Virus record (IMG/VR): IMGVR_UViG_3300032245_001746
Coordinates: 124,001-188,000 of that record
Strand: one strand, 5' to 3'
DNA: 64,000 nt
Every line of letters starts with the position of its first letter. Positions within the stretch are counted from its first letter, which is position 1. The notes under the pieces are model-generated. The model was not told the origin of the DNA and did not search any database. It worked only from the letters and a program-made list of their open reading frames with translations. The position numbers and the translations under genes are program-made. Positions 3,648 to 63,101 of this stretch are shown here, one piece after another.

Positions 3648-4177
3648 AAAGGTTTAATGACTGGAGGACTTTTTTCTGTAACTTTGCCACTACTTGTTGT
3701 AATAGATTCTTGAAATTGTTTGCATATTAATATGGTTCTCATGTTTCCCCATAATTTAAATTCAGCATAATTTCTTTGAACAATTTCCCAATTTTCACCC
3801 AAATGTGGTGTATGAATTCTAGATCCTATTTTTGGCATGTGTCCAATTCTTTTAATTAAGTCATTAGTGTTGCACTCAATTGCAATTTCATTCATAGAAT
3901 CAAGACCAAATTGATTTAAAAAATTTTGCGATGCAACTGGATCATATAATCCCCAAAATTCAACAGGAAAATTAGAAAATATTTTTCCTCTAGCTTCATT
4001 ATAATCTGGATCTATTTCGCTATTAGCTATGAAAACTTCATAATAATAAATTGGACTACCAGATGACATTATAGTTTCTTGATCCCATAGATCAAACAAT
4101 TTTAATTGATTGTTTTTAGGATCAAATTGTCTTATACCCCCGCCAGCTTTGTATTCAGTTCCATCTGAATTTTTCAT
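3644..4177 (-). CDS. Neck / head-closure protein (T4 gp14-like)
   Basis: G.PIYYY, DPDYNE, QFGLDS.NE, PKIG.RI, WEIV pattern typical of gp14-like proteins; gene context. Confidence 0.65.
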   Translation of the reverse strand: MKNSDGTEYKAGGGIRQFDPKNNQLKLFDLWDQETIMSSGSPIYYYEVFIANSEIDPDYNEARGKIFSNFPVEFWGLYDPVASQNFLNQFGLDSMNEIAIECNTNDLIKRIGHMPKIGSRIHTPHLGENWEIVQRNYAEFKLWGNMRTILICKQFQESITTSSGKVTEKSPPVIKPF

Positions 4178-4698
4178 TTTTTAGGTCCTCGTTTTAGAGA
4201 AACTCCTTTTAATTTAGCAGAATGTCTGTCCGGTTCGTCTTTTAGAGAGAACATTAATTTTCTTGCTTCTGCTGTAATTTCTGCTGCCGAGTCACCAGAA
4301 CATTTTTTCTTATCTTGTAAAGATATTGTTTTTACATCTTTATTATAATATCCTTTTCCAATTATAAATGATCCACCACTATAATCAGGATGAAAATAAA
4401 TGATTCCAACCCATGTTCCATCTATCCAATTGTTTTTTGATACAATTATTCTTACAGGATCTTGTTCGTACACATGTTTAATGTGATATCCATTTTGTTT
4501 TAATGCTGCACCAACATAACCTAAAGAAATTTTAGCATATGCTTTTAAAATTTCTTTTAATTTACTTCTAAAATTCACTTCAATACTATAACGACCAGTT
4601 GTTTGTTCATTTAATATGTTGTTGTTAACACACCATTCATTTAAGGATGTGCTTTCATTAATTTTATTGAACATTGACCAATCTTTGTATGATTTCAT
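4174..4698 (-). CDS. Hypothetical protein with capsid-targeting-like leader
   Basis: N-terminus MKSYKDW...INE. Confidence 0.7.
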   Translation of the reverse strand: MKSYKDWSMFNKINESTSLNEWCVNNNILNEQTTGRYSIEVNFRSKLKEILKAYAKISLGYVGAALKQNGYHIKHVYEQDPVRIIVSKNNWIDGTWVGIIYFHPDYSGGSFIIGKGYYNKDVKTISLQDKKKCSGDSAAEITAEARKLMFSLKDEPDRHSAKLKGVSLKRGPKK

Positions 4699-4711
4699 TA
4701 TTTGTTATATA

Positions 4712-5236
4712 TTATCTTAATTCAATTTTTTTAGATTCACCAGCACTTGGAGAAAACACTAATTCTTTAATTTTTATTTTTTTACCAAAAAATTCTTTGT
4801 TGCCCACTAATTCTTGGCATTTTCCTTTTTTTACGTATGCTAGAGTACAATGAGGCTTATATCCATTATAAGTTGATGTATATTTTAAAGATTTTAATTT
4901 ATCATTTAATTTTCTTAATTTGTCGCTTTCAACTTCTATTTTTACAACATCATAATCATCATTTTCAAATTTACTTATTTTTCCTAATTTTATTTCAAAT
5001 TCTTTTTCGTCTTTAATTATTTCTTTAATTTCATCAAATTCTGTTGTGTGTAATCCGTATAATACAGTAACATGAGGTTCTGTTTCATATCCTGATTTAT
5101 TTTCTTTATAATATAAATCATCTTTAGAAATATTTTTTTTAGCCCAACTTAATATTTTATCATATTCTACTGTTGCCATTACACATGAATAAGTGTATGA
5201 TTCGTTTAAAACAACCCAATTTTTAAAATCTAACAT
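4712..5236 (-). CDS. 2H phosphoesterase, Acb1/T4 gp57B-like
   Basis: Two HxT motifs: EPHVTVLYG and YKPHCTLAY; leader MLDFKNW...LNE. Confidence 0.8.
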   Translation of the reverse strand: MLDFKNWVVLNESYTYSCVMATVEYDKILSWAKKNISKDDLYYKENKSGYETEPHVTVLYGLHTTEFDEIKEIIKDEKEFEIKLGKISKFENDDYDVVKIEVESDKLRKLNDKLKSLKYTSTYNGYKPHCTLAYVKKGKCQELVGNKEFFGKKIKIKELVFSPSAGESKKIELR

Positions 5237-5266
5237 GTTTTTATTTATTATTTAACAAGACAAAAT

Positions 5267-5506
5267 ATGCAAAAATTATCTGAAGAAAATAAAAAAATTA
5301 TTTTTCAATCAATTGTTGAATTGAAAAAAGTTTTAAATCAAAATCATTCTAAAATAAATAAAAAATCAAGAGGTGGAGCACAAGTTGGTTGTATTTGTGG
5401 AAATTCACAAACTTGTGTACCTTGTAGTGGTTTAGCATTTATTAAATCTGCTATCGTTTATAACGATAAAGAAATGCTTGAATTTATTGGAAAAACTTGT
5501 TTATGA
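5267..5506 (+). CDS. Small Cys-rich hypothetical protein
   Basis: CICG..CVPC cluster. Confidence 0.55.
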   Translation: MQKLSEENKKIIFQSIVELKKVLNQNHSKINKKSRGGAQVGCICGNSQTCVPCSGLAFIKSAIVYNDKEMLEFIGKTCL

Positions 5507-7137
5507 TTGATTTAGAAAAATTAGAAAAACCATATGAAAAATATACAATTAGATCAATAATTCCATTAATTTGTGATTATTGTGGTTGTTCATTTAGTAG
5601 AGTTAAAAAATCTATTGAAAGATTAAATGTTAATTGTAAAAAAGATAGTTGTGGCTCTAAAGAATGCACAAAATTAAAGAAAAATGATGTAAATGTTAAT
5701 TTATTTGGATCTGAAAATTACTTCACATCAGAGGTTTTTAAAGAAAAACAAAAAGAAACAAATTTAGAAAAATTTGGCACTGAAGAATATTTTGATTCTA
5801 ATGATTTTAAAAACAAGAGAAAAGAAACTTTAATCGAAAGATATGGAGTTGATTCCCCTCTTAAAGATGAATCAATTAAAGAAAAACAGAAAAATACAGT
5901 TTTAAGTTTGTATGGAAAAACAAATTATGCTCAAACTGATGAATATAAAGAAAAATTAAAATTAGTTGATATTAATTATGATGAACTCATAAAGAAAAGA
6001 GATCAAACATCTTTAAATAAATATGGTGTTACAAGTTATTGTAAAACTGACGAACATAAAAAAAGAAAAAAAGAAACATGTTTAAAAAAATATAGATTTG
6101 ATCACAGTTCTAAATCAGAATTAAATAGACAATTAGCAAAAGATACGTGTGTTAAAAAATATGATGAAATTAGTTATTCTAAAACAAATGAATTTAAAGA
6201 AAGATACAAAAACACATGTATGGAACGATATGGAGTGCCAACAGTTTTAATGTTGGCAAAAAATAGAATTTATGGCAAAACAGAAAATGAATTAAAAAAT
6301 TTTATTAACTCATTTGGTTTTGATTTTAAAAAAGATTTTTCTGTATTAAATGGAAAAGAATTAGATTTATATGATGAAACTAAAAAAATAGCAATTGAAT
6401 ATTGTGGATTATATTGGCACAATGAATTTTCTTCTCTTAAAAAAGATAAAAATTATCATTATAATAAATACAAAACATGTAAAGATCAAGGAATTCACTT
6501 AATTACCATATTTTCTGATGAATGGGATTATAAAAAAACTCAATGTAAAAATTTCATAAAATCTATTCTTGGAGTTTATGAAACAAAAATTTTCGCAAGA
6601 AAATGTGAAATTAAAGAAATTGATAAAAAAAACTGTTGCAATTTTTGTGATCTATATCATATACAAGGATCTGTTAAAAAACATAAAGTTAGTTATGGAA
6701 TTTTTTATCAAAATGAATTATTAGGAGTAATTTCACTTGGACAACACCATAGAAACACACGTGCAAATAACATTGTTTTAAATCGACTTTGTTTTAAAGA
6801 TGGTTTTCAAATTGTTGGTGGAGCAAGTAAATTATTTAAACATTGTATTAATTGGGCAAAATTAAATGGTTATGAAAGCATAATCTCTTGGAGCGATAAT
6901 AGATGGTCGGTTGGAAGTGTTTATAAAGCTTTAAATTTTCAATTAGATGAAGAGTTAAAACCAGATTATAGCTATGTAAATTTAAGAAATTGTAAAAAAA
7001 GATTATCAAAACAATCTCAAAAAAAATCATCATCAAACTGTCCTAAAAATAAAACAGAATATCAATGGGCAATAGAAAGAGGATTAGCAAGGATATGGGA
7101 TTGCGGAAAAATAAGATGGAAATATACTATCCCATAG
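5503..7137 (+). mobile_element. Free-standing homing endonuclease (Hef-like PD-(D/E)xK with T.L.KYG repeats)
   Basis: Repeated TxLxKYG units; ELDLY..KKIAIEYCGLYWH, LITIFSDEW, IFARKC, RIWDCG; opposite strand within neck gene cluster. Confidence 0.8.
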
Positions 7138-8005
7138 TAATTATACCTGGGTCTCCAAATTTATAAATTAAATCTTCCATCCATTGTTTTCTTTCTTCTT
7201 TTGCTTCTTGAATTAATTGATCTCCATCAAGTTGTATTCCACCATTAGGTCCAGGTAAATTTTTAATTCTTCCTCGAATACGTCCCAAAATTTCTTTGGC
7301 ATAGGATAACGCGCCTTCTGTCATTGCTTGTGTTACATTTTCCCAGTCTTTACATTTTTGTATATAATGAATAGCAACTTTGTTCATATTATATGGAACT
7401 GGATATAATTTAATGTGTTTATATCCACCTATAAATTCCCATCCACCTAAATTAGATGAAACTCTACTATACATAGTTTCATACGTTTTATATAATGTCC
7501 ACTCTCCCATTCGACCCCAAATTGGTTGTATTGGATCAATTAATCCGCCTTGTATAGAAGCATAATTTCCACCTGGGTAAAAATATTCAATAGGAATTGT
7601 TCCACCTAAATCTGTTGCTTGAAATGCAAAAGTTCCCATATTTTTATATTCTACACTTCTTACATAACCAATATCATCTGGCATTTCATAAATACTTTGT
7701 CCAGGTTTTGTGGTAAATGTATAATAAGAATAAAAATCTCTTGGAGCATAATCTTCTACTATTTTTAAAGCTTGATTGATACAAAAATCAATATTTTGTT
7801 CATCTAATTCTAATTGAATATTAGGAGCACCTAACATATTCAAGATATAATCTCTTATTTCTTCTCTAACTTTTTCTCTTTTAGGTCTAGGACCAACATT
7901 TTTACAACCACCAGATGGTCCAGAACATGATGTTGAACACATCACTGAATTAACACCTTGTGAGGTTGGTCTTCCTAAAGCTATAGTATTATTTCCGCAT
8001 GACAT
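7127..8005 (-). CDS. Neck protein (T4 gp13-like)
   Basis: DYIL.MLGAP.I.LELDEQ.ID.CI..AL and LPGPNGGIQLDG..L..EA.EE motifs. Confidence 0.85.
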   Translation of the reverse strand: MSCGNNTIALGRPTSQGVNSVMCSTSCSGPSGGCKNVGPRPKREKVREEIRDYILNMLGAPNIQLELDEQNIDFCINQALKIVEDYAPRDFYSYYTFTTKPGQSIYEMPDDIGYVRSVEYKNMGTFAFQATDLGGTIPIEYFYPGGNYASIQGGLIDPIQPIWGRMGEWTLYKTYETMYSRVSSNLGGWEFIGGYKHIKLYPVPYNMNKVAIHYIQKCKDWENVTQAMTEGALSYAKEILGRIRGRIKNLPGPNGGIQLDGDQLIQEAKEERKQWMEDLIYKFGDPGIITMG

Positions 8006-10266: not shown

Positions 10267-11148
10267 TTAAAATGGTGGGTCATCTGGATCATTCTTAAAA
10301 GGCTTACTAATTTGTGGTTTAATTTTCTTTTTTCTTTTGTTTTTTAATAGTTGTCCACCTAGCAAATCCCATTTAATTTCTTTTGGATCTTCTTCATAAT
10401 CTTCATAACCATAATAATCCATTTCTGATTTTCGCAATCTATCTGCATCTGCGTATGGATTTGATCCTGCCCATAATGGATCTATTAAGACTAAAGATCC
10501 ATCTTTTCTTTGCATATAATTATTTTTGTTAAGATCAATATTTCCATTGAGTCCTGCTGTGGATATTATATAAAAAGCTTCAAATAATGGATATAATTTA
10601 GGATATTTTTCAAATAGTTCTATTTCTCTTTTATATACTTTTTCTTTTACTATTTCCCATTTATAATCTTTTCCTCTTCCTATTCTAGTTTGCTTTTCGA
10701 TTTCTTTATTTTCTTGACCATATTGTTTTGCTTCGAAATAAGAAATTGAATAGTCTATATTGTTAACAATTTGTTTCATTAATTCTTGATCATCAATTGG
10801 GTATAACAATTCAATTCTAGCAAGATAAATCATTGACGATGATTTCATTCTTTTGTAGAATGGCACAATTCTTTGTGGTGGACCATAAATTTTAGGAAAT
10901 GCAGGATGTGGATTTTTATATGCAAATCTAGCAAATCTTAAATAATATGGATCATCTTTAAAAGTTTTTACAACATAATTCCATTTTGGATGATAAAACA
11001 CTTCTCCACAACTTCCATTTCCAATATATTTTCCGCCTTCTGCATAGAATTCTTCCAATATTTCTTCTAATGATTTGTTTTTATTTAATGGATTTAAAAA
11101 CAAATCGGTTGGAGTGTCAAATGATTCATAAAAAAGTTTAAAATTCAT
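10267..11148 (-). CDS. Protein kinase-like protein with capsid-targeting-like leader
   Basis: IGNGSCGEVF Gly loop, YVVK lysine, DLNKNN catalytic loop, LIDP. Confidence 0.75.
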   Translation of the reverse strand: MNFKLFYESFDTPTDLFLNPLNKNKSLEEILEEFYAEGGKYIGNGSCGEVFYHPKWNYVVKTFKDDPYYLRFARFAYKNPHPAFPKIYGPPQRIVPFYKRMKSSSMIYLARIELLYPIDDQELMKQIVNNIDYSISYFEAKQYGQENKEIEKQTRIGRGKDYKWEIVKEKVYKREIELFEKYPKLYPLFEAFYIISTAGLNGNIDLNKNNYMQRKDGSLVLIDPLWAGSNPYADADRLRKSEMDYYGYEDYEEDPKEIKWDLLGGQLLKNKRKKKIKPQISKPFKNDPDDPPF

Positions 11149-11156: not shown

Positions 11157-11759
11157 CTAATAATAATGCACATTTGTGTTTTGATCTATATCATATGGAG
11201 TGTTCTTCAATATATTTATTGCCGTTCTAGTTTCAATTACTTTTGGGCTTATTAATGAAATAGGATTATCCCAATATACTTCTTCTACCGTTCCATGTTG
11301 TGGCATGTCAGTTGTTGTAAACATAATTGCAGAAATAGCTTCTGTCATATTTGCTTTTGTAAATCCTTTTGTTGTTAAATTTTTAAATTTTGGTTTTTCG
11401 AAATCTTTTGGATGAATTAGTTTATTAATATTTGATGCTTTATATATGCTAATGATATGATCAAATTGAACTTGAGGAACCCATTTTCCATACGTGCAAC
11501 TTATAGCAAAAACTCCTGCATTTCCGTAACCAAGTTTGTTTTCGTTAATAATTTTTTCAATATTTTCTTTTAAGGTAAAATGAATAAATTTATCTTTTTT
11601 TAATTCTAATTTGAAAAATTTTCTAGTATTATGTCTTTTCCAAAAATCTATTTGTTGAGAGTTATTTGGTTGTTTAGCCCAAATATTTTTACTAAATTCA
11701 CTTCCATGAAATTCTTCTTTGTCAAATTCTAAATTTTCAAACCACTTTTTAAAATTCAT
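11157..11759 (-). CDS. Putative ADP-ribosyltransferase-fold protein with leader
   Basis: FIHFT..NI.KI....L, GVFA, EEVYW spacing resembles H-class ARTs; leader MNFKKWFE. Confidence 0.4.
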   Translation of the reverse strand: MNFKKWFENLEFDKEEFHGSEFSKNIWAKQPNNSQQIDFWKRHNTRKFFKLELKKDKFIHFTLKENIEKIINENKLGYGNAGVFAISCTYGKWVPQVQFDHIISIYKASNINKLIHPKDFEKPKFKNLTTKGFTKANMTEAISAIMFTTTDMPQHGTVEEVYWDNPISLISPKVIETRTAINILKNTPYDIDQNTNVHYY

Positions 11760-12495
11760 TTGTTTTCCTTGTTATTTCAAAATTATTTCCATTCATTTTT
11801 AAATCCCAATCTTTATTGAAAAATCTATTAAATAATTTTTCATATACTGATGATCTTCTGTTTTTAATCATTTCAATTCCATGTTTGTAAGATGTAATTG
11901 CATTTCTTAATTCATTTGTGTTGAAATAAAATTCAAACGAATCTTTTTGAAGTTTATTAAAAATTGTTAAAATTTTGCCAAAATAAATGTTTATTTGATT
12001 TAAAAAATCTAAACAACTTGTGTCAGATTTTAAATTTGAAACTAATTCTTTGAAATAATTTATTATAATCAAATCTTGATTGTCAGTTTCATTTGTAATT
12101 TCTTCAAGTGATGAAAAAACTTTATTTTTTATTGGGTTTAAATTTATATTAGATATAATTTTTGAATCATTTTTATCTTCATAAGATTGAAAATATATTT
12201 TTTTAATATTGATCTCATCAGCTTTTTCTTTTATTAAATACAAAACTCCAGGTAATATTTCTGGATCTCTTCCAAGAATTTCGTTTCGTTCTGTTTTTTC
12301 ATATGATTCATTTACATAAAAAGACACTTCGTAAACTTGATCTTGTTTTTTAAAAAAAGTAACTTTAACTTCATTTTTTAATGAAGTTACAAAACTTAAT
12401 TCAATTATGTTATTACGAAATGATTTTTTTATAGAACCATTTGGCTTTCTTAATTCTACAATTTCATTTAATATCCATTTTTTAAATTCCAACAT
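11749..12495 (-). CDS. Hypothetical protein with leader
   Basis: MLEFKKWILNE start. Confidence 0.7.
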   Translation of the reverse strand: MLEFKKWILNEIVELRKPNGSIKKSFRNNIIELSFVTSLKNEVKVTFFKKQDQVYEVSFYVNESYEKTERNEILGRDPEILPGVLYLIKEKADEINIKKIYFQSYEDKNDSKIISNINLNPIKNKVFSSLEEITNETDNQDLIIINYFKELVSNLKSDTSCLDFLNQINIYFGKILTIFNKLQKDSFEFYFNTNELRNAITSYKHGIEMIKNRRSSVYEKLFNRFFNKDWDLKMNGNNFEITRKTNEF

Positions 12496-12546: not shown

Positions 12547-12846
12547 ATGTTAACATTTAATAAAGTTTTAGAAAAAATTGATGAATCTCATTCTAATAAT
12601 TCTGAAGAATTTAATGATAAAGCAATTGCTACCATTAAAACTGGATTAAATTTGGATGAAGATTTTTGGGATAATTTTAAAAATATATGTAATTCGCCTG
12701 GTTTGGGAGAGTTATTGGGAGTGAGTAAAAACGTAATTTCAACATGGTATTCCAAAATAGATAAACATCTAAATAAAGTTGAAGAAATGGAATTAAATTC
12801 TTCTAAAAGAAATAAAATGATAAAAACTGGATACGAAGATGAATAA
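12547..12846 (+). CDS. Small protein with leader and possible HTH
   Basis: MLTFNKVLE..IDE; LGELLGVSKNVISTW. Confidence 0.65.
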   Translation: MLTFNKVLEKIDESHSNNSEEFNDKAIATIKTGLNLDEDFWDNFKNICNSPGLGELLGVSKNVISTWYSKIDKHLNKVEEMELNSSKRNKMIKTGYEDE

Positions 12847-23350: not shown

Positions 23351-23382
23351 TTGAAATTTAATTCATGTTGAAAGGAGTCAAT

Positions 23383-50548: not shown

Positions 50549-50592
50549 AGTTTTTTATATATTGTTTTAATATATAAAAAACTATGATTGTT
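50540..50592. repeat. Perfect 24-bp inverted repeat covering both start codons of a divergent gene pair
   Basis: AACAATCATAGTTTTTTATATATT-GTTTT-AATATATAAAAAACTATGATTGTT. Confidence 0.9.
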
Positions 50593-51600
50593 CTTGATTT
50601 TAAATTATTTATAGAAAACGAAAAAATGGAAAATATACCTAAAGGAAAACTTTTTGGTTTAGACGCGAAACGTGTATCTACTCAAGAATTAGAATTGGTG
50701 GTACAAGAATTAAGAAAATTAATTGGAAGTAATTTTTCTTATTTTGAAAGAGTTGATTCGTTAAAAGAAAAACATGATCATGGAGATATAGATATTTTGG
50801 TAATTCCTCCATTGAATATTAAACAATTATTAAATGATTCAATTCCCGAAAAAGTTTTAAAATTTTCTAAAAATGATTGCGTAAATTCATTTTTGTTTCA
50901 ATCTGAATATGTGAACAAAAATGTTCATGTTGATTTAATAACTTGTGAAAATAAAGAAAAATTACAATCTAAGAAATATTATTATGGATTAAACGATTTT
51001 TCAGCTTTGGTTGGAGTTTTATCTAAAAAATTAAACTTTAAATATGGAACTGAAGGGTTTTTCAAAAGGTTTAAAGATAAAAAAGGAAATTGGCATGATG
51101 TTTTTATTACTTTTAATTTATTAAAAGGACTAGAAATATTGGGATTTGATATATCTTTATATAATAAAATTAAAAATTATAATGATATAGCAGAATTTGT
51201 GCTTACAAGTCCATTGTTTGATTATAGATTTTTTACACAAGATGCTTTATTAGCTAGAGATAGAGTCTCACTTGGAAGGCGTCCTAATTTAGAACAAATG
51301 ATTAATTTTGTAATTAAATCAAATAAAACCGCAACTATTACTGATGAAGATCATTTCTTTAAGAAATTAATGCCAGAACAATATAAAAAATGTCAAGAAG
51401 AAATGAAAGAAATAAATAATAAAACTTATGAAATTGCAAATAAATACAATGGATCTTGGTTAATGTTAAATTTTGGCTTAAAGCCAGGTCCAGATGTCGG
51501 CAAAATCTTGAAATTAATGAATGATAAATTTAAAGAAAATTTACCAAATGCTGATGAGCAAGAAGTAGTTAATTTCGTAAAATTAAATTTAAACAAATAA
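50584..51600 (+). CDS. Pol-beta-family nucleotidyltransferase with leader
   Basis: HGDIDIL and VHVDLI catalytic Asp residues; C-terminal NG..LM..GLKPGPDVGKIL as in CCA/poly(A) polymerase tails. Confidence 0.75.
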   Translation: MIVLDFKLFIENEKMENIPKGKLFGLDAKRVSTQELELVVQELRKLIGSNFSYFERVDSLKEKHDHGDIDILVIPPLNIKQLLNDSIPEKVLKFSKNDCVNSFLFQSEYVNKNVHVDLITCENKEKLQSKKYYYGLNDFSALVGVLSKKLNFKYGTEGFFKRFKDKKGNWHDVFITFNLLKGLEILGFDISLYNKIKNYNDIAEFVLTSPLFDYRFFTQDALLARDRVSLGRRPNLEQMINFVIKSNKTATITDEDHFFKKLMPEQYKKCQEEMKEINNKTYEIANKYNGSWLMLNFGLKPGPDVGKILKLMNDKFKENLPNADEQEVVNFVKLNLNK

Positions 51601-51627: not shown

Positions 51628-51984
51628 ATGAAAAGTTTTTCAAAATGGGTTAAAGACAATTTTAATGAATCTATAAATGATTTATCTTATTCTGATGATA
51701 AGAGAGTGAACCAAAGAAGTGTTGATTTCACAAATGATGATAATTCGGATCATTATGCTAAAGATATTAATTTAGCAAAAGAAATTATAAAAGATTTAAA
51801 ATATCAAATAATTGATGTTAATGAAGCTACTTCTAAATTAATTAATGCAGTTAAAAATTCTATTAACCCATCAGTGGTTTATTCAAACATAGTAGATGAT
51901 TTGAGGTTTGAATATAAAGAAATTTTAAGAACTATAGCACTTAATGTTCCTTCTGTAAGAAACATTTGGGCAAATGTTTCTTAA
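51628..51984 (+). CDS. Hypothetical protein with leader
   Basis: MKSFSKW....FNE. Confidence 0.7.
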   Translation: MKSFSKWVKDNFNESINDLSYSDDKRVNQRSVDFTNDDNSDHYAKDINLAKEIIKDLKYQIIDVNEATSKLINAVKNSINPSVVYSNIVDDLRFEYKEILRTIALNVPSVRNIWANVS

Positions 51985-52017: not shown

Positions 52018-54153
52018 ATGAAATTGCTTTTTTTCAAAGAATGGTTTAATTTATATGAAGGTAAATTCGAAGATCAATCTTTATCAATATTGAATAAAGA
52101 TGAAGAGTTGTTTAATTTATTAGCTTCAAAAGCACCAGAACCTAAATATTTACCAATTATTTCTTATTTTTATAAACAATCAGGCAATTTAAATGTTTTG
52201 AAAGATTTAATAAATAAATATAAAGAATTTGTTGATAAGAAAAAGCTGTCAATGATTCAAATAACAAACAAAGGAGCTTTTTTAAATAATCAAGAAATTA
52301 ATTATGTTAAATTTGCTGAAATTATACACGCCGCAGAATCAAATAATCGAATTGTTAAAACAAACATAGATACAAACGCATCTGGATTGAAACCTATTTT
52401 TACTATTAAAGATAAAATAGAAATTTATAAAGCTAAAGATTCTAGAGAATGTGTCCTTTTAGGAAAAGGATATACCTTCTGTATAAGTAATCCTAATGCC
52501 GGTCTAAATATGTGGAATACATATAGAAATTCATATGAATCAACTTTTTACTTTGTTTTTGAAAAAACAAGAAGACAAGATGATCCATTAAGAATTGTTG
52601 TTGTAGATGCTCGAAGAGATGGCGATTTTGCACTTACTGATGCTAATAATAAAACTGGAACAATTAGTGAATTTAACCATTTTGATGAGTATTTTGGATA
52701 TCTTAATTCTGTTTATAAAATAAATTCTGATTCTTTATTTATCAATGAGCCACTAACACAGCAAGAAAGAAAAGATAATGCAATAGTAGATCAAAAAATA
52801 ATGACATTAGATAATTTTAAAAAATTGACATTATCACAAAAAGAAAAATATATTGGGAATGGACACGAACTCACCAATGAACAATTTAATTACATTTTTG
52901 ATAACAATATGGTTAATTTTATTATTCAATATATAAACACTGGAATTAAATTGGATAATGATCAATTAAAAAAAATATTTAAAAATCCATCTTATAAAAA
53001 AACTTATTTAAGACAAAGACTTGAAGTTCAAAGACATCTCCATAGACCAGATATTGGAAGATTTGAATATTTAAATTTGGATGATAATTCTAAAAGACAA
53101 ATTGATTTAAACAAAGTTGATAAAAAACAATGGTTTTTAGAAGCTGCGTATTTGGGAGATGAAGAGTATGTTTCGAATACAATTCAAAACTTAAAAGGAA
53201 ATCCTGATGACGATGGCACATTAACATCAGCATATTTGGAAGCTGTAAAATCTAAAAATTTAAATATTGTTAAAATGATAGATGAAAAATTTGATAAATC
53301 TCATGCATTAAGTAAAACTGCCATTGGATGGATATTTGATGATATTACAAAATATAGTACAATTGAAATTTTAGATTATTTTGTTAAAAAATATCATAAA
53401 CATTATAATATTGGATTTGGATTTCAAAACGTTGCAAAAAGAAATGAAGTTGCAATGGTTAAATATTTTATTGATAATTTTGAAATGAAAGATTATGAAT
53501 ATAGTTTAGCATTATATTCATCTGTTAAAAATAATGCTATTGATTCTTTAAATATTATTTTAGACAGCCCAGAATTAGAAAACGAACATACTGTATTAAA
53601 CACCGCTATGAGTATAGCTGCAGAACATGGAAATCTTAAAGTTGCAAAATTAATTTTAGACAAACATAAAATTAATTTTTATGATGCAACTTTAAATGCA
53701 ATAGAACATAAACAATATCAATTTTTAGAATTTATCTTTAAAGCCAGAAAAGATTTTCCTGAAAAATGGCTAGTGGATTTTTTGAAAACTGCAATTAAAG
53801 CTAAAAGCTTACCAATTTTCAAATTGATATTAAGCCAATCATCTGATTCTGAAAAACTACTTAGAAATAATTTGTTAGATTATATTGAAAATTATAAAGA
53901 AGATAATGATGAATTATATAACTTCATTAAAAAGAAAGATTTTGAATTTTATTTTAATTCAGGAATTAATTTAGCAAAATCTTCTGACATAAATTCAAAA
54001 TCAAAAAATGAAATTAAATATTTTTTTAATATGATTAGAGATAATGGAATTAAAGATTTTTCAGAAATTAAAAAGGCTGCAAAAGAAGCTGGAAATATCC
54101 ATACATATAATGTTTTAAATGATATTCCATTTTTGAGAAGTAATTATGAATAA
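52018..54153 (+). CDS. Large protein with leader, possible PcfJ/GNAT-like domain and ankyrin-like repeats
   Basis: MKLLFFKEW..LYE; LG.G..FCIS..W..Y..FYF; repeats such as AAEHGNLKVAKLIL and AVKSKNLNIVK. Confidence 0.6.
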   Translation: MKLLFFKEWFNLYEGKFEDQSLSILNKDEELFNLLASKAPEPKYLPIISYFYKQSGNLNVLKDLINKYKEFVDKKKLSMIQITNKGAFLNNQEINYVKFAEIIHAAESNNRIVKTNIDTNASGLKPIFTIKDKIEIYKAKDSRECVLLGKGYTFCISNPNAGLNMWNTYRNSYESTFYFVFEKTRRQDDPLRIVVVDARRDGDFALTDANNKTGTISEFNHFDEYFGYLNSVYKINSDSLFINEPLTQQERKDNAIVDQKIMTLDNFKKLTLSQKEKYIGNGHELTNEQFNYIFDNNMVNFIIQYINTGIKLDNDQLKKIFKNPSYKKTYLRQRLEVQRHLHRPDIGRFEYLNLDDNSKRQIDLNKVDKKQWFLEAAYLGDEEYVSNTIQNLKGNPDDDGTLTSAYLEAVKSKNLNIVKMIDEKFDKSHALSKTAIGWIFDDITKYSTIEILDYFVKKYHKHYNIGFGFQNVAKRNEVAMVKYFIDNFEMKDYEYSLALYSSVKNNAIDSLNIILDSPELENEHTVLNTAMSIAAEHGNLKVAKLILDKHKINFYDATLNAIEHKQYQFLEFIFKARKDFPEKWLVDFLKTAIKAKSLPIFKLILSQSSDSEKLLRNNLLDYIENYKEDNDELYNFIKKKDFEFYFNSGINLAKSSDINSKSKNEIKYFFNMIRDNGIKDFSEIKKAAKEAGNIHTYNVLNDIPFLRSNYE

Positions 54154-56489: not shown

Positions 56490-56801
56490 TTAAACTTTCT
56501 TAACAGTAAATACAAATTGTGCTGGATAATCTGAATGTGACTCATAATATGCTGGCTTTTGATAAGTGACTTTCCATCCACTTTCTTCATAAAATGGTTC
56601 TATATCAAGATATTTGTTTTTATACACATCATCTTCACTTATGTTCATAACTTTTTTTATCTCGCAAACAACTTTATCTTGATAAACAATAGATTTATTA
56701 TTGTTAAAATTTTTAGCAATTTCTTTATTGAAAATTTCAATTATTCTTTCATCAATAAATTTATTTTCAATAACTTCTTTTGGAGTAATTGGTTTAATCA
56801 T
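56490..56801 (-). CDS. Hypothetical phage protein
   Basis: KPITP, LDIE..Y...GWKV.Y.KP.Y.E pattern. Confidence 0.7.
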   Translation of the reverse strand: MIKPITPKEVIENKFIDERIIEIFNKEIAKNFNNNKSIVYQDKVVCEIKKVMNISEDDVYKNKYLDIEPFYEESGWKVTYQKPAYYESHSDYPAQFVFTVKKV

Positions 56802-57804
56802 GACTAATCAATTCTAACTTTTCAAAAGGACAATTTTTTGTTGTTTGATAATATTTAATTCTACCGTCTAAAGTTTGAACTAAATACTTGCTATTTATTC
56901 GAACTTTCCAAATATCTCTTTTTTCAGATGAAGAAAGATCTGATGCCAACCCTTCAACATGATTGAAATCGTTTGCTAAAAATATATTTGCTGGTAATTC
57001 TTTAGTGTTTAAATAAAAATTTCTATCTTGTTTAGGTCTAGCTGTATAAAGAGTAAGTGTTTTTGATTTCGATGCCGTTGGATTTCTAAGCTTTTCAATT
57101 AAACTAAAATAATCAGATTGAATTTTTGCATCTTTGAAAAAATCTTCATCGCCACCTTCCAATATATCATCTATTTCTATTTCGTTATTTTTAATAAAAA
57201 TTGTAAAACTTGTATTCCTAGAACGATCTAAAATAATTTCTGCTGTAGTTGATGCATCTAAACTTAAAGAATTAAATTCATTTTTCCCAAGATATGGTCT
57301 TATAATTATCTCAGACAAATTCCAATTTTCTATTAAATTTATAGCATTTATTATTTTTGTCTTTAATGCTTCCATTATTAATTTTGTTTCATTCATTGCT
57401 AATGCAGCTTTATTTTTTGCTTCTGTAAGCTCATTTTCTAATCCAGAACTTGTAGATAAAGTATCCATGTAAACAAATATTTGGTTGCTTATTTCACGCA
57501 ATTTGCTTGATATTTTATAATCTTGAGATAAGATCCAATCTCTCAATTGTTTTTGTTGATCAAAAATATAATTTATATTTTTAGATTTTATACTATTTAA
57601 TAAATTGTTTAATTTTGGATAATTAAACAATTTAGAATTTATTGTATTAATGAAATTTTCAAAATTAAAATTTTTAATTTTTTCATAATAATCTTCTATG
57701 CGATTTAAATATTCTTCTAAAGCTTGATTGATAGAAGTCTCATATTGTTTGTAATCAATGATTATTTTATTATCAAACGATTCTATCCAAATTTTAAAAT
57801 TCAT
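56794..57804 (-). CDS. Protein with leader and putative C-terminal ADP-ribosyltransferase-like domain
   Basis: MNFKIWIE; TLYTAR...IFLAND....A...IWKVRI spacing. Confidence 0.4.
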   Translation of the reverse strand: MNFKIWIESFDNKIIIDYKQYETSINQALEEYLNRIEDYYEKIKNFNFENFINTINSKLFNYPKLNNLLNSIKSKNINYIFDQQKQLRDWILSQDYKISSKLREISNQIFVYMDTLSTSSGLENELTEAKNKAALAMNETKLIMEALKTKIINAINLIENWNLSEIIIRPYLGKNEFNSLSLDASTTAEIILDRSRNTSFTIFIKNNEIEIDDILEGGDEDFFKDAKIQSDYFSLIEKLRNPTASKSKTLTLYTARPKQDRNFYLNTKELPANIFLANDFNHVEGLASDLSSSEKRDIWKVRINSKYLVQTLDGRIKYYQTTKNCPFEKLELISHD

Positions 57805-57980: not shown

Positions 57981-59547
57981 TATTTATTAATCTAATGATG
58001 GAATTTTTATTGTTTAAAATTTAATTAAGACTTATTTTTTATTCCAATTTTAATGTTATTTATTTCTGTTTCTGTCCATGTACTAGATGTATTTGGATTT
58101 ACATTAAATATTTCTGTATGATATGGAGTAGTTGATTGCAAAGTCCCATTCACAGTTTTATTTGATCCAACTTCGTTGTTATTAATTACAAATTTTGTAA
58201 TTCCATCAACAGCAGCTTGAGACTCAGCAAATAATGAATTTAATTGAATTCCTTTAATATTATTAATTGTTGATAAATTTTTTATATTAAATTGAGATAC
58301 ATCGCCGTTAACACTTGATGTAATAAATTTAGTTATATTACTATGTACTTGTGACATTTCTCTAGCATTTAAAGAATTAGTGTAATCAAGTGACCAATCA
58401 TCCATGTAAATTGCTGCTGTATGTGGTCCAAATTTAATCGTACTTGGAGAAGTTAAATTAAAAGTAAATTGCTGATATGTAGTTGTAACATTAATCGTTG
58501 ATTGAACATTATTTATTGTGATTGGATATGAAGTTGATGGCTGTCCAACACCAACTCTAGCCCAAAATGAAAAAATACTTGCATTTGTATCAAATTGAAA
58601 CCAACAAGAAGTATTTATAATAGACAATCCTGCCGGAGTAGTTCTGACAACCGAACCAGAAGTTTCTCTTATAATACCTCTATTACCAGAAGTAATTTCA
58701 TTTAAATAACTAATATTTGTACATCCAAGTGGAATTAAAAATTCATGCGGGTCAGTAAATGATGTAGTAAACGATGTTGATAATACGGTTCCATTAGCGT
58801 TACCAAAATTTGAAGTATCATCAGTTATTGGTATTAATGTTTCTATTCTTGGAATATACAATTCAGTTCCAATTTTAACGTTATTTGCTGCACCAGTGTC
58901 ATCAAGAATATAAAAATCATCAATTAAATATGTTGAATATAAACCAACAGCCAAAGTAAAAGTTCCATCATAACTCATTGATGTGGCACTTGTTGCTCGC
59001 TCCGTGCCATTAATGTAAAGACGAATTGGATTTCCAACCGAAGGAGTAATTGGAATTAACATTTCAATATGTGCCCAATTATTGAACATGACTGAACTTG
59101 GTTGTGTATACAAAAGAACATTATTTAAATAAATTATATGATTTCCACTCGAATTATTATAAAGTATTTTAAGTCCTTTGGTATTATCGTTAGCACCATT
59201 TGATAATCTAATTTCAAAATTTAAAGCTGATGTAACTTTAATGTTAAATCCCAATATAAAATGAGAAATACCTGTTGCAGATATTGCTTTTTTTAAAAAA
59301 CCAGCATTTTTAGGACTTGTTATTTGAACAGCACTACCACTAAATCTTCCAGGTTTAGCAATCCACGATCCAGATACAGTTGTCCAATTCCTAGCCAATC
59401 CTGTTGTGACATTATCCGTTGGATCATTTGATGATGTGTTTAATTGAAAATTTCCATAATTATCAAATCCCTCTAAAAATCTAATTGCCATTTATACTCC
59501 AATTAATTTGTATAATAAATATATTTATTAATCTAATGATGGAATTT
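57981..59547. repeat. Exact 26-bp direct repeats (57981-58006 and 59522-59547) flanking one gene
   Basis: TATTTATTAATCTAATGATGGAATTT at both sites. Confidence 0.9.
58025..59491 (-). CDS. Probable virion appendage / tail protein (lectin-like beta sandwich)
   Basis: F.EGFD.Y start, W.HIE..., LYING, IDDFYILD.TG..NN, NP.T...WT. Confidence 0.6.
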   Translation of the reverse strand: MAIRFLEGFDNYGNFQLNTSSNDPTDNVTTGLARNWTTVSGSWIAKPGRFSGSAVQITSPKNAGFLKKAISATGISHFILGFNIKVTSALNFEIRLSNGANDNTKGLKILYNNSSGNHIIYLNNVLLYTQPSSVMFNNWAHIEMLIPITPSVGNPIRLYINGTERATSATSMSYDGTFTLAVGLYSTYLIDDFYILDDTGAANNVKIGTELYIPRIETLIPITDDTSNFGNANGTVLSTSFTTSFTDPHEFLIPLGCTNISYLNEITSGNRGIIRETSGSVVRTTPAGLSIINTSCWFQFDTNASIFSFWARVGVGQPSTSYPITINNVQSTINVTTTYQQFTFNLTSPSTIKFGPHTAAIYMDDWSLDYTNSLNAREMSQVHSNITKFITSSVNGDVSQFNIKNLSTINNIKGIQLNSLFAESQAAVDGITKFVINNNEVGSNKTVNGTLQSTTPYHTEIFNVNPNTSSTWTETEINNIKIGIKNKS

Positions 59548-60292
59548 CTGATTGTTTTACATCTCTTCCATACTTTCTTGAGTGTCCAAAATCAAAAGAT
59601 TGTAATTTATTTTTATTATTTAATCCCAAATTGTCAGGAGACCAATCATGTCCTATGGAATATCCAGTTTTTTTAAACACCTTTTCCATTAATTTTATAA
59701 TTTGATTTGCAAAATCCAAAACCATTGGATCTTCTGGGCGTCCAGCCATCCAATAATTAAATTCTTTTATGTTAAATTTGGTTGGAACTTTAGTTTTATC
59801 TTTGTTTTCATCTTCTAAATCAGAAATAAATTGATAAACTAAATAAGTTGCATCATGTATTTCAATATCTATTTTTTTAAAATCAGTATTTAACTCTTTC
59901 ATTGCAATTAAATACATTCCCTGATATGTAATAACATCAACAACCGGAAAGCTTGCATCTCCTTTCATTAAATAAGCTATATTTGCCTCATCTACTCCTT
60001 TTGTAAATTTAACTACATATTTATTTCCTAAAAACAATACGCATCCTTCCATTCCACACTTGGTTTTATTATGTGATCCAGGAATAAATTTTGAATTAAA
60101 TTTTCTAATCCAATTACATAAGGTTCCACAAGAATTTCCATCCATTAATTCTTGTGGAACCTTAGATATTACATTATCTTCATTAAAAACATCTGAAGAA
60201 TAGAGTTTTTTCAAACCAAACACCACCCTCTCAGCAGTTTGCATTAAAAAACTTGTTTGTCTTTCTGTTATTAACCATTCTTTGAAATTCAT
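59528..60292 (-). CDS. Kinase-like protein with leader (paralog of 62319..63101)
   Basis: G.EG.V, VVKF..EA, HDWSPDNLG, FDFG. Confidence 0.7.
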   Translation of the reverse strand: MNFKEWLITERQTSFLMQTAERVVFGLKKLYSSDVFNEDNVISKVPQELMDGNSCGTLCNWIRKFNSKFIPGSHNKTKCGMEGCVLFLGNKYVVKFTKGVDEANIAYLMKGDASFPVVDVITYQGMYLIAMKELNTDFKKIDIEIHDATYLVYQFISDLEDENKDKTKVPTKFNIKEFNYWMAGRPEDPMVLDFANQIIKLMEKVFKKTGYSIGHDWSPDNLGLNNKNKLQSFDFGHSRKYGRDVKQSEIPSLD

Positions 60293-60302
60293 AATTTATA
60301 TA

Positions 60303-61583
60303 TTAAACAAGTATATTTTTTATTATTTTTCCACCATCAACAATTTCAATTGGTCGTCCACCTGGTGCCATTAATTCCTTGTCTGCATTAATTCCAATTC
60401 TATCATAAATAGTTGCAGCCCAATCTTCAATTTCAACCGGATTATCTTGAGGTTCTGATGCTGTAGAATTTGAAGATCCATATACCATCCCTCGTTTAAT
60501 ACCACCACCAGCAAGTATTGTACTAAATACTTTTGGCCAATGATCACGACCCGAAGTGTTATTTATTTTCGGAGTTCTTCCGAATTCACTAGAAACACAA
60601 ACTAATGTTTCATTTAAAATTCCCCGTTCTTCTAAATCATTAATTAATTTAGCAAACGCTTGATCAAATGCTGGAACTTGATTATTCATTCCAACCGCTA
60701 TGTTATCATGCATATCCCAACCGCCATAAGTTAATGTAACAAAACGTACACCAGATTCTATTAATCTACGTGCCATTAACATTCTGCTTCCTGCTGTGTT
60801 CCTTCCATATTCATCTTTTGTTTTATCAGTTTCTTTACTTAAATCAAAAGCTTCTTTGGCTTGAGGAGAATCTAATAAATTATATGCTTTTTCATAAAAA
60901 GTATTCATTGCAACAAAATTGTCAGATTCTGATTTAAATCCTGAATTTACTATTTCTAATGCTTTTTTTCTTTTATTAAATCTGATTTCATCAATTCCTT
61001 GAGGAAGACTTAAATCTCTAACTGCAAAGTTTGGATCTGCTGGATCAGAACCTAAACTAAATGGTGCAAAAGATGAACTTAAATAACCTGTTCCAGCAAA
61101 TTCATTTGGTTGATTTGGTATACAAACATATTGTGGTAAATTATTTCTGACTGCATATTCATGAGAAATTACACTTCCAATACTTGGATAATTTAAAGCT
61201 GGACTTGGCTTGTAACCAGTAAATAAATTGTGTGTTCCACGCTCATGTGCTGCTTCTCCATGAGTCATAGAATTAATAATTGTTATTTTATCCATAACAG
61301 TTGCTGTATTTTTCCAATTTTCACTCAAATAAATTCCACCTACATTTGTTTGAATTGAAGAAAATGGTCCTCTATATTCAATTGGAGCATTTGGTTTTGG
61401 ATCAAAACTTTCTTGATGTGCCATTCCTCCTGGAAGAAATATAAATATTACAGATTTAGCTGGTCCATCTTTTGATTCATGATTTTTAATGTCTCCAAAT
61501 GACTTTAATGCAAAAAAATTAGATAATGATAATCCAATTCCTCCACAAAAACCCGCTTGTATAAAATTTCTTCTTTTTATCAT
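60303..61583 (-). CDS. DUF1501 family protein with Tat-like signal
   Basis: RRNFI signal; AKSVIFIFL.GG.AH.ESFDPKP, LMARRL.E.GVRFV, GWDMH, EFGRTP, GRDHW. Confidence 0.9.
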   Translation of the reverse strand: MIKRRNFIQAGFCGGIGLSLSNFFALKSFGDIKNHESKDGPAKSVIFIFLPGGMAHQESFDPKPNAPIEYRGPFSSIQTNVGGIYLSENWKNTATVMDKITIINSMTHGEAAHERGTHNLFTGYKPSPALNYPSIGSVISHEYAVRNNLPQYVCIPNQPNEFAGTGYLSSSFAPFSLGSDPADPNFAVRDLSLPQGIDEIRFNKRKKALEIVNSGFKSESDNFVAMNTFYEKAYNLLDSPQAKEAFDLSKETDKTKDEYGRNTAGSRMLMARRLIESGVRFVTLTYGGWDMHDNIAVGMNNQVPAFDQAFAKLINDLEERGILNETLVCVSSEFGRTPKINNTSGRDHWPKVFSTILAGGGIKRGMVYGSSNSTASEPQDNPVEIEDWAATIYDRIGINADKELMAPGGRPIEIVDGGKIIKNILV

Positions 61584-62248
61584 TTTTGATCCTTTAATTT
61601 TTCTTTTAATTCTTTTAAATCTGAATCATAAACCGTTTTTTTCAAACCTTTTAATTTATTGGCTATTGGCTCTTTGAATAATCCATGATCATGTAAATAT
61701 TTTAACCTGACCATACCTCTTATCCATACCTTTTCATTTTCAAATAATAAATCATCTTCTAAAGTAATAAAAATTACAAATTTATTATTTAATATTTTAT
61801 CATCACTTGTGAAAATATGTTCATCCAAACCTCCAGGACCAAATTTGTTTTTATATTGAAAAGTCCAAGATTCATTAGCTAAATCATTAGTACCTCTTCT
61901 TACGAATGAACAATTTCTTTGTGTAGTTGATTTTACTGCAAATTTTTCTCCAACATCTTCTTGCCAGCTTTTTTCTAAAGGTTTATATACTTTTGTATCA
62001 ATTTCAATATTATTTATTATTTTCAACTCTTCTTTTAACCATTTATATGCTATAAATTCTGCTGCCTTTGAATATGCGTCTTGTTTTGACAGTTTTCTTG
62101 GATCTGCATTACGTTTTATGCACAAATAATTGTTAAATGCAGATTTTTCTTGAGTATAATTGTTACAACAATCAATTAAATTTTGACTTAAAAAGTAACA
62201 ACATTTATCTTCTAAATAAATTAAATTTCGTTCTGTTTCTGTCATCAT
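61580..62248 (-). CDS. Hypothetical protein, possibly restriction-endonuclease fold
   Basis: K.AE...D......VKS spacing. Confidence 0.45.
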   Translation of the reverse strand: MMTETERNLIYLEDKCCYFLSQNLIDCCNNYTQEKSAFNNYLCIKRNADPRKLSKQDAYSKAAEFIAYKWLKEELKIINNIEIDTKVYKPLEKSWQEDVGEKFAVKSTTQRNCSFVRRGTNDLANESWTFQYKNKFGPGGLDEHIFTSDDKILNNKFVIFITLEDDLLFENEKVWIRGMVRLKYLHDHGLFKEPIANKLKGLKKTVYDSDLKELKEKLKDQK

Positions 62249-62318
62249 ATAGAATCATTTCTTTAAAAATACAAAATTATTGTACGAATACATCAAGGCT
62301 TTTCAATAAATATTCAGT

Positions 62319-63101
62319 ATGAATTTTAAAGAATGGTTAATAAATGAAAGAAATAACGATGCATTTGAAATAAGAATGAAAAAAATAACTTCATTTTTAT
62401 TAAAACTTTATTATGGAATTCAATTTAACGAAATTGCTGAAGTCCCACGTGAATTGTTTTCAGATAATAAATCTAGTAAATTATTTAATTGGATTAAAAG
62501 ATTTGATCCAAATTTTAAATCTGCTGATGGACTAAAAATAAAATCTGGAACGGAAAGTTCCGTGTTGTTTTTAGGAAATGGTATTGTAATTAAATTCAAT
62601 GATAATCCAAGTGAAGCCAATATCGCCTTTTTAATAAAGGGAGACCCAGATTTTCCAGTTTTAGATGTTGGCTCTTTTAATGATAACAATAATTTAATTT
62701 ATGTAATAGCAATGAAAGAATTAAAAGTGTCTTTTAATGAATTGAAACAAGATGTTGAGTCAGCTTTGAATTTGGTCCATATGTTTCAATATAAATTAAA
62801 AGAAATAAATAAATTAAATTCTAAAAAAGTTGTATCTGAATTTAATGAATATAATTTTTTTAGATGGCTATCTTCATATAAAGGAAGAGAAAATCGTTCG
62901 TATCAAATATTGGTTTATTGTATACAACTAATAAAATTATATAATAAATTACATGATAAAACAGGATATTATTCTGCAAACGATATTCATGATGGAAATT
63001 TCGGTCTTACAGATAAAAACACATTGTCTACATTTGATTATGGTTATTCTGATTTAGTTGATCCAAAAAAATCCAAAAACATTGAAATCGATGGTGTTTA
63101 A
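62319..63101 (+). CDS. Kinase-like protein with leader (paralog of 59528..60292)
   Basis: GTES.V, VIKF..EA, DIHDGNFG, FDYG. Confidence 0.75.
   Translation: MNFKEWLINERNNDAFEIRMKKITSFLLKLYYGIQFNEIAEVPRELFSDNKSSKLFNWIKRFDPNFKSADGLKIKSGTESSVLFLGNGIVIKFNDNPSEANIAFLIKGDPDFPVLDVGSFNDNNNLIYVIAMKELKVSFNELKQDVESALNLVHMFQYKLKEINKLNSKKVVSEFNEYNFFRWLSSYKGRENRSYQILVYCIQLIKLYNKLHDKTGYYSANDIHDGNFGLTDKNTLSTFDYGYSDLVDPKKSKNIEIDGV

Follow-up and report, generated by a model that had tools for sequence, protein, structure and literature searches.

Genes with a Common N-Terminal Leader

A stretch of 64,000 nucleotides (nt) of the virus record IMGVR_UViG_3300032245_001746 (positions 124,001 to 188,000 of that record; the whole stretch is referred to below as the window) was analysed as a set of 81 non-overlapping open reading frames (ORFs). 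Nineteen of them open with a short N-terminal peptide of common form, called here the leader, and 62 do not. The genes with the leader (tagged genes) make up 23% of the window genes (19/81, about a quarter). The 19 N-termini quoted in a preliminary description of this DNA all translate exactly as given there, each from the first possible ATG, GTG or TTG of its ORF, and for the six tagged genes within the stretch compared the lengths agree with gene calls made independently on the source scaffold. The observed leader is real and is not a product of chance.

The leader is composed of Met, one to four residues, Phe or Tyr, usually Lys, one residue, Trp, Phe or Tyr, zero to six residues and a closing hydrophobic-x-Glu. 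The aromatic pair (Phe/Tyr, then Trp/Phe/Tyr at i+3) is found in 17/19 leaders. At the second position before the closing Glu, all leaders (19/19) have a hydrophobic residue, including 11/11 of those in which it is distinct from the second aromatic residue (background 0.35, probability about 9e-6). Trp, encoded by TGG, is strongly enriched at positions 6-7, its overall share being 1.2%. Sec, Tat and lipoprotein signal peptides, in which a basic N-region precedes an uncharged hydrophobic core of about 7-15 residues, were considered and rejected, as Lys, Glu and Asn are interspersed in all 19 N-termini and no hydrophobic run is present.

The strict pattern proposed in the preliminary description occurs at 12/81 gene starts versus 0.06 expected from internal positions of the same proteins, which corresponds to an enrichment of about 200-fold. 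It is found at 0/224 internal Met residues of the window proteins, and shuffling of residues 2-20 of each N-terminus produces a mean of 0.23 matches with a maximum of 4. The looser aromatic-x-x-aromatic core is present at 17/81 gene starts versus about 1.1 expected. A profile hidden Markov model (HMM) built from the 19 window leaders alone scores the tagged genes at 10.4 or higher and the other 62 ORFs at 6.3 or lower, a separation that is partly circular. When the DNA of one leader variant was searched for by exact match, 31 stretches were obtained, mostly at ORF starts in AT-rich viral contigs; they give little information on the type of phage.

The proteins behind the leader had been described as unrelated. 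Their comparison by BLAST with the first 15 residues removed upholds this at the level of 18 families, with the exception of one homologous pair (59528-60292 and 62319-63101; 41% identity with the leader removed). The neck, sheath-stabiliser, RNA-ligase, Thg1 and NAD-synthetase proteins encoded in the window do not carry the leader. The tagged proteins are more basic than the rest (median isoelectric point, pI, 8.5 vs 7.65).

Proteins Encoded by the Tagged Genes

In this section, coordinates are followed in brackets by strand, length in amino acids (aa), leader codons with their position and leader-HMM score. Among the cargo functions suggested earlier, 2H phosphoesterase, GNAT acetyltransferase, Pol-beta-like nucleotidyltransferase and the DUF5856 ferritin-like protein (itself a doubtful member of the set) pass the family test. 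The product of 4712-5236 (minus, 174 aa, codons 1-12 at 5201-5236, score 20.0) matches Pfam 2_5_RNA_ligase2 (PF13563; 1e-11, 45.6 bits vs a cut-off of 27) and Acb1 (PF23474; 1.8e-8, 34.7 bits vs a cut-off of 27), and both H-x-T catalytic motifs are present (H55 and H129), as in T4 57B. By the family test it is an Acb1-like 2H phosphoesterase, with predicted activity on cyclic nucleotides. A GNAT acetyltransferase is encoded by 15511-15870 (plus, 119 aa, codons 1-11 at 15511-15543, score 22.4; Pfam Acetyltransf_7, 3.9e-7, above the cut-off; phrog_10691, 9e-21), and a Pol-beta-like nucleotidyltransferase by 50584-51600 (plus, 338 aa, codons 1-11 at 50584-50616, score 18.8; phrog_24943, 6.9e-16; weak PDB sequence matches to Pol X, E 0.005). 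PDB sequence searches with four tagged proteins gave this weak Pol X match and nothing else.

Gene 45394-45777 (minus, 127 aa, score 10.4) encodes a ferritin-like protein of the DUF5856/T4 rI.-1 type (Pfam DUF5856, 4.6e-25), whose residues 6-126 match positions 5-128 of the 129 positions of phrog_858. It had been counted among the tagged genes, and is probably not a true member, because its N-terminus lies within its own DUF5856/phrog_858 family profile and its HMM score is the lowest of all.

Other assignments proved weaker. The 711-aa product of 52018-54153 (plus, codons 1-14 at 52018-52059, score 14.6) contains a possible ankyrin region, and its description as ankyrin-like is borderline (Ank_2, 26.3 bits, just under the cut-off of 27.3). 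The three kinases proposed in the preliminary description are not sustained, their matches lying below the cut-off (E about 0.005). The product of 10267-11148 (minus, 293 aa, codons 1-8 at 11125-11148, score 15.1) matches a phage protein-kinase PHROG only below the threshold (E 0.005) and has no sequence match in PDB, and 62319-63101 (plus, 260 aa, codons 1-10 at 62319-62348, score 24.8) has an ABC1 kinase match below the cut-off. The latter gene is regarded as an ORFan, since the search for its homologs gave a single match among 5.8 billion proteins; its paralog in the window is 59528-60292 (minus, 254 aa, codons 1-10 at 60263-60292, score 19.1). Cargo resembling ADP-ribosyltransferases had also been suggested; BLAST of T4 Alt, ModA/B, the internal proteins (IPs) IPI-III and gp2 against the window found no homologs, and this assignment is therefore dropped.

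A recognisable family is absent from most tagged proteins in the Pfam and PHROG searches. No significant family was obtained there for 11157-11759 (minus, 200 aa, codons 1-8 at 11736-11759, score 17.8), 11749-12495 (minus, 248 aa, codons 1-11 at 12463-12495, score 22.9), 28526-29131 (minus, 201 aa, codons 1-12 at 29096-29131, score 20.4), 33404-33661 (plus, 85 aa, codons 1-9 at 33404-33430, score 21.4), 47434-48309 (plus, 291 aa, codons 1-9 at 47434-47460, score 20.9) and 51628-51984 (plus, 118 aa, codons 1-14 at 51628-51669, score 18.4). Gene 56794-57804 (minus, 336 aa, codons 1-8 at 57781-57804, score 19.7) has no Pfam or PHROG family and no PDB sequence match.

The set is completed by four further genes. 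Gene 4174-4698 (minus, 174 aa, score 15.1) has its leader core in codons 1-15 (4654-4698), and the full propeptide probably extends to Glu30 (4609-4698), as predicted from its homologs. In 12547-12846 (plus, 99 aa, codons 1-9 at 12547-12573, score 17.0) the fit is looser, Val replacing the second aromatic residue. The small basic ORF 48318-48491 (plus, 57 aa, codons 1-10 at 48318-48347, score 24.1; pI 10.3 without the leader) is called a gene from the ORF and the leader alone. Gene 50192-50548 (minus, 118 aa, codons 1-12 at 50513-50548, score 17.3) starts opposite the nucleotidyltransferase gene.

The Leader as a Separable Module

Two protein families bear out the notion that the leader is a modular add-on placed ahead of unrelated domains. 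About half of the Acb1-family homologs (n=101) have the leader directly before the first conserved strand; in the others the protein begins with the domain itself or has a Trp/Tyr-x-x-Phe/Tyr variant that is nearer to the leader of T4. Five Acb1 relatives on other contigs (P0019, P0028, P0030, P0031 and P0036) consist of the leader, a copy of the capsid N-arm, a Lys-rich linker and the Acb1 domain. The copy is 62% identical over 26 residues to the post-cleavage N-arm of the capsid protein (L003:12819-14264), and the junction between the leader and the N-arm falls exactly at the inferred capsid cleavage site; therefore, the leader occupies the place of the capsid propeptide. The Acb1 enzyme with such a copy may be tethered to the capsid shell or may be a mimic of it.

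In the 4174-4698 family (52 homologs) the leader stands at the start and is followed by a spacer variable in length and sequence, which puts the start of the domain at residue 15 to 75 and often contains extra hydrophobic-x-Glu sites. A hydrophobic-x-Glu is located 3-6 residues before the RYS[IV]E anchor in 45/51 homologs having the anchor. The AlphaFold model of 4174-4698 (mean predicted local distance difference test value, pLDDT, 79) shows low confidence for residues 1-45 and a globular domain at about 47-155; its comparison with PDB folds gave no significant match (best E 0.012, template modelling score 0.24). As predicted by the alignment and the model, this anatomy (variable spacer, conserved Glu site, low-confidence extension) is that of a removable propeptide.

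Head Module Beyond the Right End of the Window

The head module is located on the same scaffold, 1-9 kb past the right end of the window, with the capsid protein, the scaffold-like protein and the protease within 1-4 kb. It includes the major capsid protein (L003:12819-14264; Pfam Gp23, 1.7e-88), a Glu-rich scaffold-like protein of 308 aa, the prohead protease (L003:15227-15946, minus strand, about 3.5 kb past the window's right end; Peptidase_S77, 3.5e-26), a 600-aa protein, one further tagged ORF and a T4-type portal (L003:18225-20735, about 6.5-9 kb past the window's right end; Portal_T4, 3.9e-70). The portal gene is interrupted by an intein (Pfam Intein_splicing, 1.7e-11, inside Portal_T4).

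The preliminary description had pointed to cleavage by a gp21-like protease, and such an enzyme is indeed encoded in the genome: the Peptidase_S77 protein retains the conserved His-Pro and Ser-Ser-Arg-Gly blocks and aligns with T4 gp21 at 29% identity (E 8e-19). The capsid protein carries L-N-E/S (the slash marks the predicted cut) eight residues ahead of its Pfam domain, and the capsid propeptide appears to end at this site. Leader ends of the types I-N-E/S, L-N-E/S and F-N-E/S share their form with it. The capsid protein, the scaffold-like protein, the protease and the 600-aa protein each open with a short peptide ending in hydrophobic-x-Glu, as do T4 gp21, gp22, gp67 and gp68; among untagged window ORFs the frequency of such an opening is 27%.

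Phage Genome and Occurrence of the Leader in Relatives

The window occupies about 207.1-271.1 kb on a 530,789-bp ENA metagenome scaffold; the IMG/VR contig containing it is 319,857 bp long. Judged by its genes, the phage is a huge T4 relative with a genome of at least 530 kb. Comparison of 12 kb of the window with 50,697 phage records (megablast) gave no match. The nearest deposited genome, LR756511.1, belongs to an uncultured huge phage (595,163 bp), and the major capsid proteins of the two phages share 66.7% identity; the identity of the capsid protein is 33% or less to all isolates and 29% to T4. On these identities the phage is therefore placed in a clade of 500-600 kb, very distant T4 relatives.

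In LR756511 (595 kb, 41-46% GC) 27/1083 first-ATG starts score 10 or more with the leader HMM and 15 score 8-10, the distribution being bimodal; among non-start ATGs 9/3983 score 10 or more, about half of these being further possible start codons of the genes already counted. The same score is reached by 3/1068 ORFs in a set of 120 T4-like capsid-gene loci, which are independent of the training set. The syntenic region of a 546-kb contig (L161, 36% GC) contains 3/32 genes at 10 or more, plus five weaker look-alikes, and in that of a 136-kb contig (L162, 34% GC) 4/31 called genes are tagged. Since the tag is kept at 34-42% GC in related huge phages, it is not an artefact of AT bias. Within the same genome as the window, a further three or four genes with the tag are located in the 319-340 kb region (L163), and one of them belongs to the PolyA_pol family.

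Homologs of 4/19 tagged genes are present in LR756511; two of these four keep the leader, one is without it and one is atypical. The LR756511 ortholog of 4174-4698 carries the leader, the distant homolog of 52018-54153 (1076 aa) starts with it, and the homolog of 12547-12846 has the atypical N-terminus. As far as these comparisons show, the tagged genes are accessory and fast-evolving, like those of the T4 internal proteins.

Likeness to the Capsid-Targeting Sequence of T4

The leader had been likened to the capsid-targeting sequence (CTS) of the T4 internal proteins, and this likeness is recovered by the model built from the window. When all 1550 ATG-initiated open frames of T4 of at least 40 codons (NC_000866) are scored, the window-leader HMM ranks ipI 2nd, ipIII 9th and ipII 11th. 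The chance that all three IP genes fall within the top 11 is about 3e-7 (hypergeometric estimate).

For the leader of T4 IPIII, residues 4 and 7 are reported as the main determinants of targeting, and residues 8 and 10 as those of processing (PMC9026906). Those positions are Tyr4, Phe7, Ile8 and Glu10 in the T4 leader. The window leaders conserve the same four features, namely an aromatic pair three apart followed by hydrophobic-x-Glu.

Nucleotide-Level Signals and Other Genes of the Window

Shine-Dalgarno-like sequences are as frequent in tagged as in untagged genes (47% in each), and the codon choice in the leaders is the same as in the gene bodies. A perfect inverted repeat (50540-50592; 24-nt arms, 5-nt centre) spans the starts of the divergent tagged genes 50548(-)/50584(+) together with an AT-rich promoter-like box and includes the first three codons (ATG ATT GTT) of each gene. 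It looks like a mirrored promoter-plus-start cassette, and this single case suggests that such cassettes could be copied. An AT-rich TAATATATAA-like box is located immediately upstream of several tagged starts. A ACTATATA(G)-like box recurs in divergent intergenic regions, upstream of 8005/8052, 17069/17143, 29131/29180, 33404 and 49630. Both types of box are candidate phage promoters.

The neighbouring genes of the window include those for a gp15-type sheath stabiliser (2505-3428), the gp13 neck protein (7127-8005), an RNA ligase, a Thg1-like enzyme and NAD synthetase. A 1661-aa ORF without a Pfam match (17143-22128, plus strand) has a local GC content of 36%, compared with 26% for the 64-kb window, and is followed downstream by a subtilase gene (23365-24324, plus strand; Peptidase_S8, 1.7e-57). 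The 426-aa DUF1501 protein (60303-61583, minus strand) has an N-terminus resembling a twin-arginine export signal (Arg-Arg-Asn-Phe, then a hydrophobic stretch), which is unusual in a phage gene.

Clusters of tagged genes are flanked by mobile elements. These are a homing-endonuclease-like gene with DUF7487 and Mom domains (5503-7137, plus strand), its partial paralog with 34% identity at the opposite end of the window (63369-63767, minus strand) and a DUF723 protein (L003:11051-12676) inserted between the window end and the capsid gene. An actin-like gene (Pfam Volactin; L165:526-1554) is present on the same scaffold at about 298 kb; a cytoskeletal role during infection is conceivable.

Possible Function of the Leader

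The explanation preferred here, with moderate confidence, is that the leader is a T4-type capsid-targeting propeptide used on a large scale. Dozens of unrelated proteins are then probably pre-packed in the head to enter the host with the DNA. The aromatic residues three apart could form a face of a short N-terminal helix, which would bind the scaffolding core of the assembling prohead; because the tag would bind this core, every protein bearing it would be enclosed in the head. The gp21-type serine protease would cut after Glu at head maturation, freeing the mature protein inside the capsid, and the freed protein would exit with the DNA at the next infection. The label would thus be applied to many fast-evolving accessory proteins, including the Acb1-like phosphoesterase, GNAT, the Pol-beta-like nucleotidyltransferase and an enzyme of the poly(A)-polymerase family.

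Several observations weigh against this explanation. The leader HMM ranks T4 61.1 1st, arn.2 3rd, a C-terminal uvsW ORF 4th, 57B 8th and ndd.1 10th, and these five are not known as head cargo; the packaged protein Alt lies outside the top 25. The motif is therefore neither proven sufficient nor necessary. Around the cleavage site, the capsid propeptide does not align unambiguously with T4 gp23. Tagged genes are distributed very unevenly: no leader scoring 10 or more is present in two unbiased 10-kb samples taken elsewhere in the genome, and the borderline tags in these samples are on a UvrD-type helicase and a Toprim primase, which would be odd cargo. The T4 late promoter TATAAATA (15 occurrences in the window) is not enriched, being located within 80 nt upstream of 1/19 tagged vs 3/62 untagged genes, and no late-promoter consensus could be derived from the structural genes of the phage. 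Core binding, cleavage, packaging, ejection and anti-defence roles are steps that we infer from sequence.

The high-scoring T4 frames are located in NC_000866 at 19130(-) for 61.1, 114210(+) for the C-terminal uvsW ORF, 162172(-) for arn.2, 166316(-) for ndd.1 and 74410(-) for 57B. These frames may encode head cargo that has gone unnoticed; otherwise, the motif by itself is insufficient for packaging. That 61.1, the uvsW C-terminal ORF and ndd.1 may also be head cargo is a testable idea.

The same five T4 frames, scoring like internal proteins, are the main argument for a rather unlikely alternative, in which T4-related phages use the tag as a general N-terminal module for something other than packaging (a helix for folding or stability, recognition by another factor of the phage or the host, or another intracellular address) and its likeness to the T4 CTS is a shared N-terminal style and not shared packaging. 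The weaker versions of the tag on the helicase and the primase also fit such a module, 23% of the window genes is a very large share for cargo, and the genome encodes an actin-like protein, so that intracellular organisation is conceivable. However, a general module leaves unexplained the invariant hydrophobic-x-Glu end, the conserved Glu site before the mature domain despite variable spacers, and the leader in the place of the capsid propeptide in some relatives. Moreover, the conserved positions are those mutationally mapped in T4 for capsid targeting and processing (PMC9026906).

Alternatively, the tag could direct proteins into the prohead and be cut off there, most of the cargo having its role within the head, in the core, in inner-body-like packing or in DNA condensation, and not acting as enzymatic effectors delivered to the host. 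The more basic character of the tagged proteins agrees with this, most of them are without a recognisable enzyme domain, and the giant phages phiKZ and SPN3US pack many processed proteins in the head. Such a role for most of the cargo is nevertheless improbable: at least four proteins have enzyme domains (the Acb1-like protein with both H-x-T motifs, GNAT, the Pol-beta-like nucleotidyltransferase and the PolyA_pol-family protein in L163), and the fast turnover of cargo between relatives fits arms-race proteins better than structural ones.

Conservation at the nucleotide level, with the peptide as a by-product of a translation-initiation or leaderless-mRNA signal or of a mobile promoter-plus-start cassette, is very improbable. 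The perfect inverted repeat extending over the first three codons of two divergent tagged genes, the TAATATATAA-like box upstream of several tagged starts and the absence of a Shine-Dalgarno-like sequence from about half of the tagged genes could be accounted for in this way. On the other hand, the Shine-Dalgarno frequency and codon choice of the tagged genes do not stand apart; substitutions conserve the type of amino acid (Phe/Tyr; Trp/Phe/Tyr) and not the base; the distance from Met varies by 1-4 residues; and the peptide pattern is the same at 26%, 34-36% and 42% GC, a change of 16 points. The upstream k-mer enrichment is weak (4-6/19 genes, uncorrected for multiple tests). Finally, AT-rich genes often use Lys, Asn, Phe, Ile and Glu, but an artefact of chance or composition of a 26% GC genome has practically no probability and is refuted by the enrichment test (12 observed vs 0.06 expected, at most 4 in shuffles, Trp enriched at 6-7), the HMM separation and the LR756511 counts, the pattern being kept at 42% GC.

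A further extension of the propeptide explanation is possible, though short of probable: the clade could have made the leader a general address label, and the virion could carry an 'infection kit' of dozens of different proteins. The contents of such a kit, proposed just as tentatively, would be an Acb1-like enzyme acting against the cyclic-oligonucleotide-based anti-phage signalling system (CBASS), acetyl- and nucleotidyl-transferases, a poly(A)-polymerase-family enzyme and perhaps replication enzymes. If this is true, the injected arsenal of uncultured phages could be read from the leader alone.

A packaging label readable in the sequence would bear on the use that huge phages make of their extra genes and oversized capsids, and metagenomic sequence by itself would reveal the proteins that accompany the DNA and act ahead of phage gene expression. 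Such proteins are prime candidates for counter-defence; IPI* of T4 acts against GmrSD. If an Acb1-like enzyme arrived in finished form, immune signalling by cyclic nucleotides would be weakened from the very start of infection. If the preferred explanation is true, the T4 CTS, so far a peculiarity of the T-even phages, becomes a mechanism conserved in relatives that are very distant from them (29% identity of the capsid protein), and the T4 protein-delivery platform gains new natural leader variants.

Comparison with Known Systems

In phage P1, the Dar proteins correspond to the concept of anti-defence proteins that are pre-loaded in the capsid and delivered with the DNA. Dar incorporation is ordered by protein-protein dependencies (DarA, Hdf) and is not known to use a short shared cleavable leader.

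In phiKZ, 201phi2-1 and SPN3US many head-internal proteins are cut after Glu by a diverged gp21-like protease, and redundant propeptide sites are present (PMC9026906). The several candidate Glu sites in the N-terminal extension of the 4174-4698 family resemble this arrangement. The cleavage motif of the phiKZ-type phages is Ser/Ala-x-Glu (PMC9026906), and they are not known to have a short shared N-terminal address; in the phage studied here, by contrast, the residue two before Glu is hydrophobic (19/19), as in T4, and a common 10-residue leader is present. Processing of the phiKZ gp175 type was therefore rejected for the window leaders: the residue in question is hydrophobic in every one of them, and the protease is recognised by the T4 family model. 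Homology to proteins of the phiKZ type was not observed.

The closest counterpart is the CTS of T4 IPI, IPII and IPIII, which is removed by gp21. In both cases a tag of about 10 residues stands at the N-terminus of otherwise unrelated proteins, with aromatic residues three apart near positions 4 and 7 followed by hydrophobic-x-Glu. In both, a gp21-type (Peptidase S77) protease and a gp23-type capsid protein are encoded in the same genome, and the tagged genes are variable accessory genes. The position of the genes is similar as well. In T4, ipI adjoins 57B (Acb1) near tail-completion genes (T4 73591-74410); here two tagged genes (4174-5236), one of them the Acb1 homolog itself, adjoin gp15 and gp13, and this order is kept in the 546-kb and 136-kb relatives.

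The differences from T4 concern scale and detail. The earlier statement that the tagged genes far outnumber the few internal proteins of T4 agrees with the count of 18-19 in 64 kb, with more elsewhere, versus three IPs in T4. In the leaders described here Trp is preferred at the second aromatic position and Lys directly after the first aromatic residue, and the distance from the second aromatic residue to Glu is variable. The tagged proteins reach 711 aa and include recognisable enzymes without homology to the T4 IPs or Alt. The phage itself is distant (capsid protein 29% identical, genome at least 530 kb).

The T-even internal proteins are diverse defence proteins that share nothing but a CTS, which may be an evolutionary device for loading varied proteins (PMC3012670; PMC9026906). 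The idea of diverse CTS-labelled cargo is therefore not new and is already found in reviews. Searches of the open-access literature, including the paper describing the huge-phage clades, turned up no description of a leader of this kind in cyanophages, KVP40-type phages or huge phages. New here are the scale, the presence of enzymes among the cargo, the occurrence in huge uncultured phages so distant from T4, and the comparative evidence for the anatomy of a propeptide.

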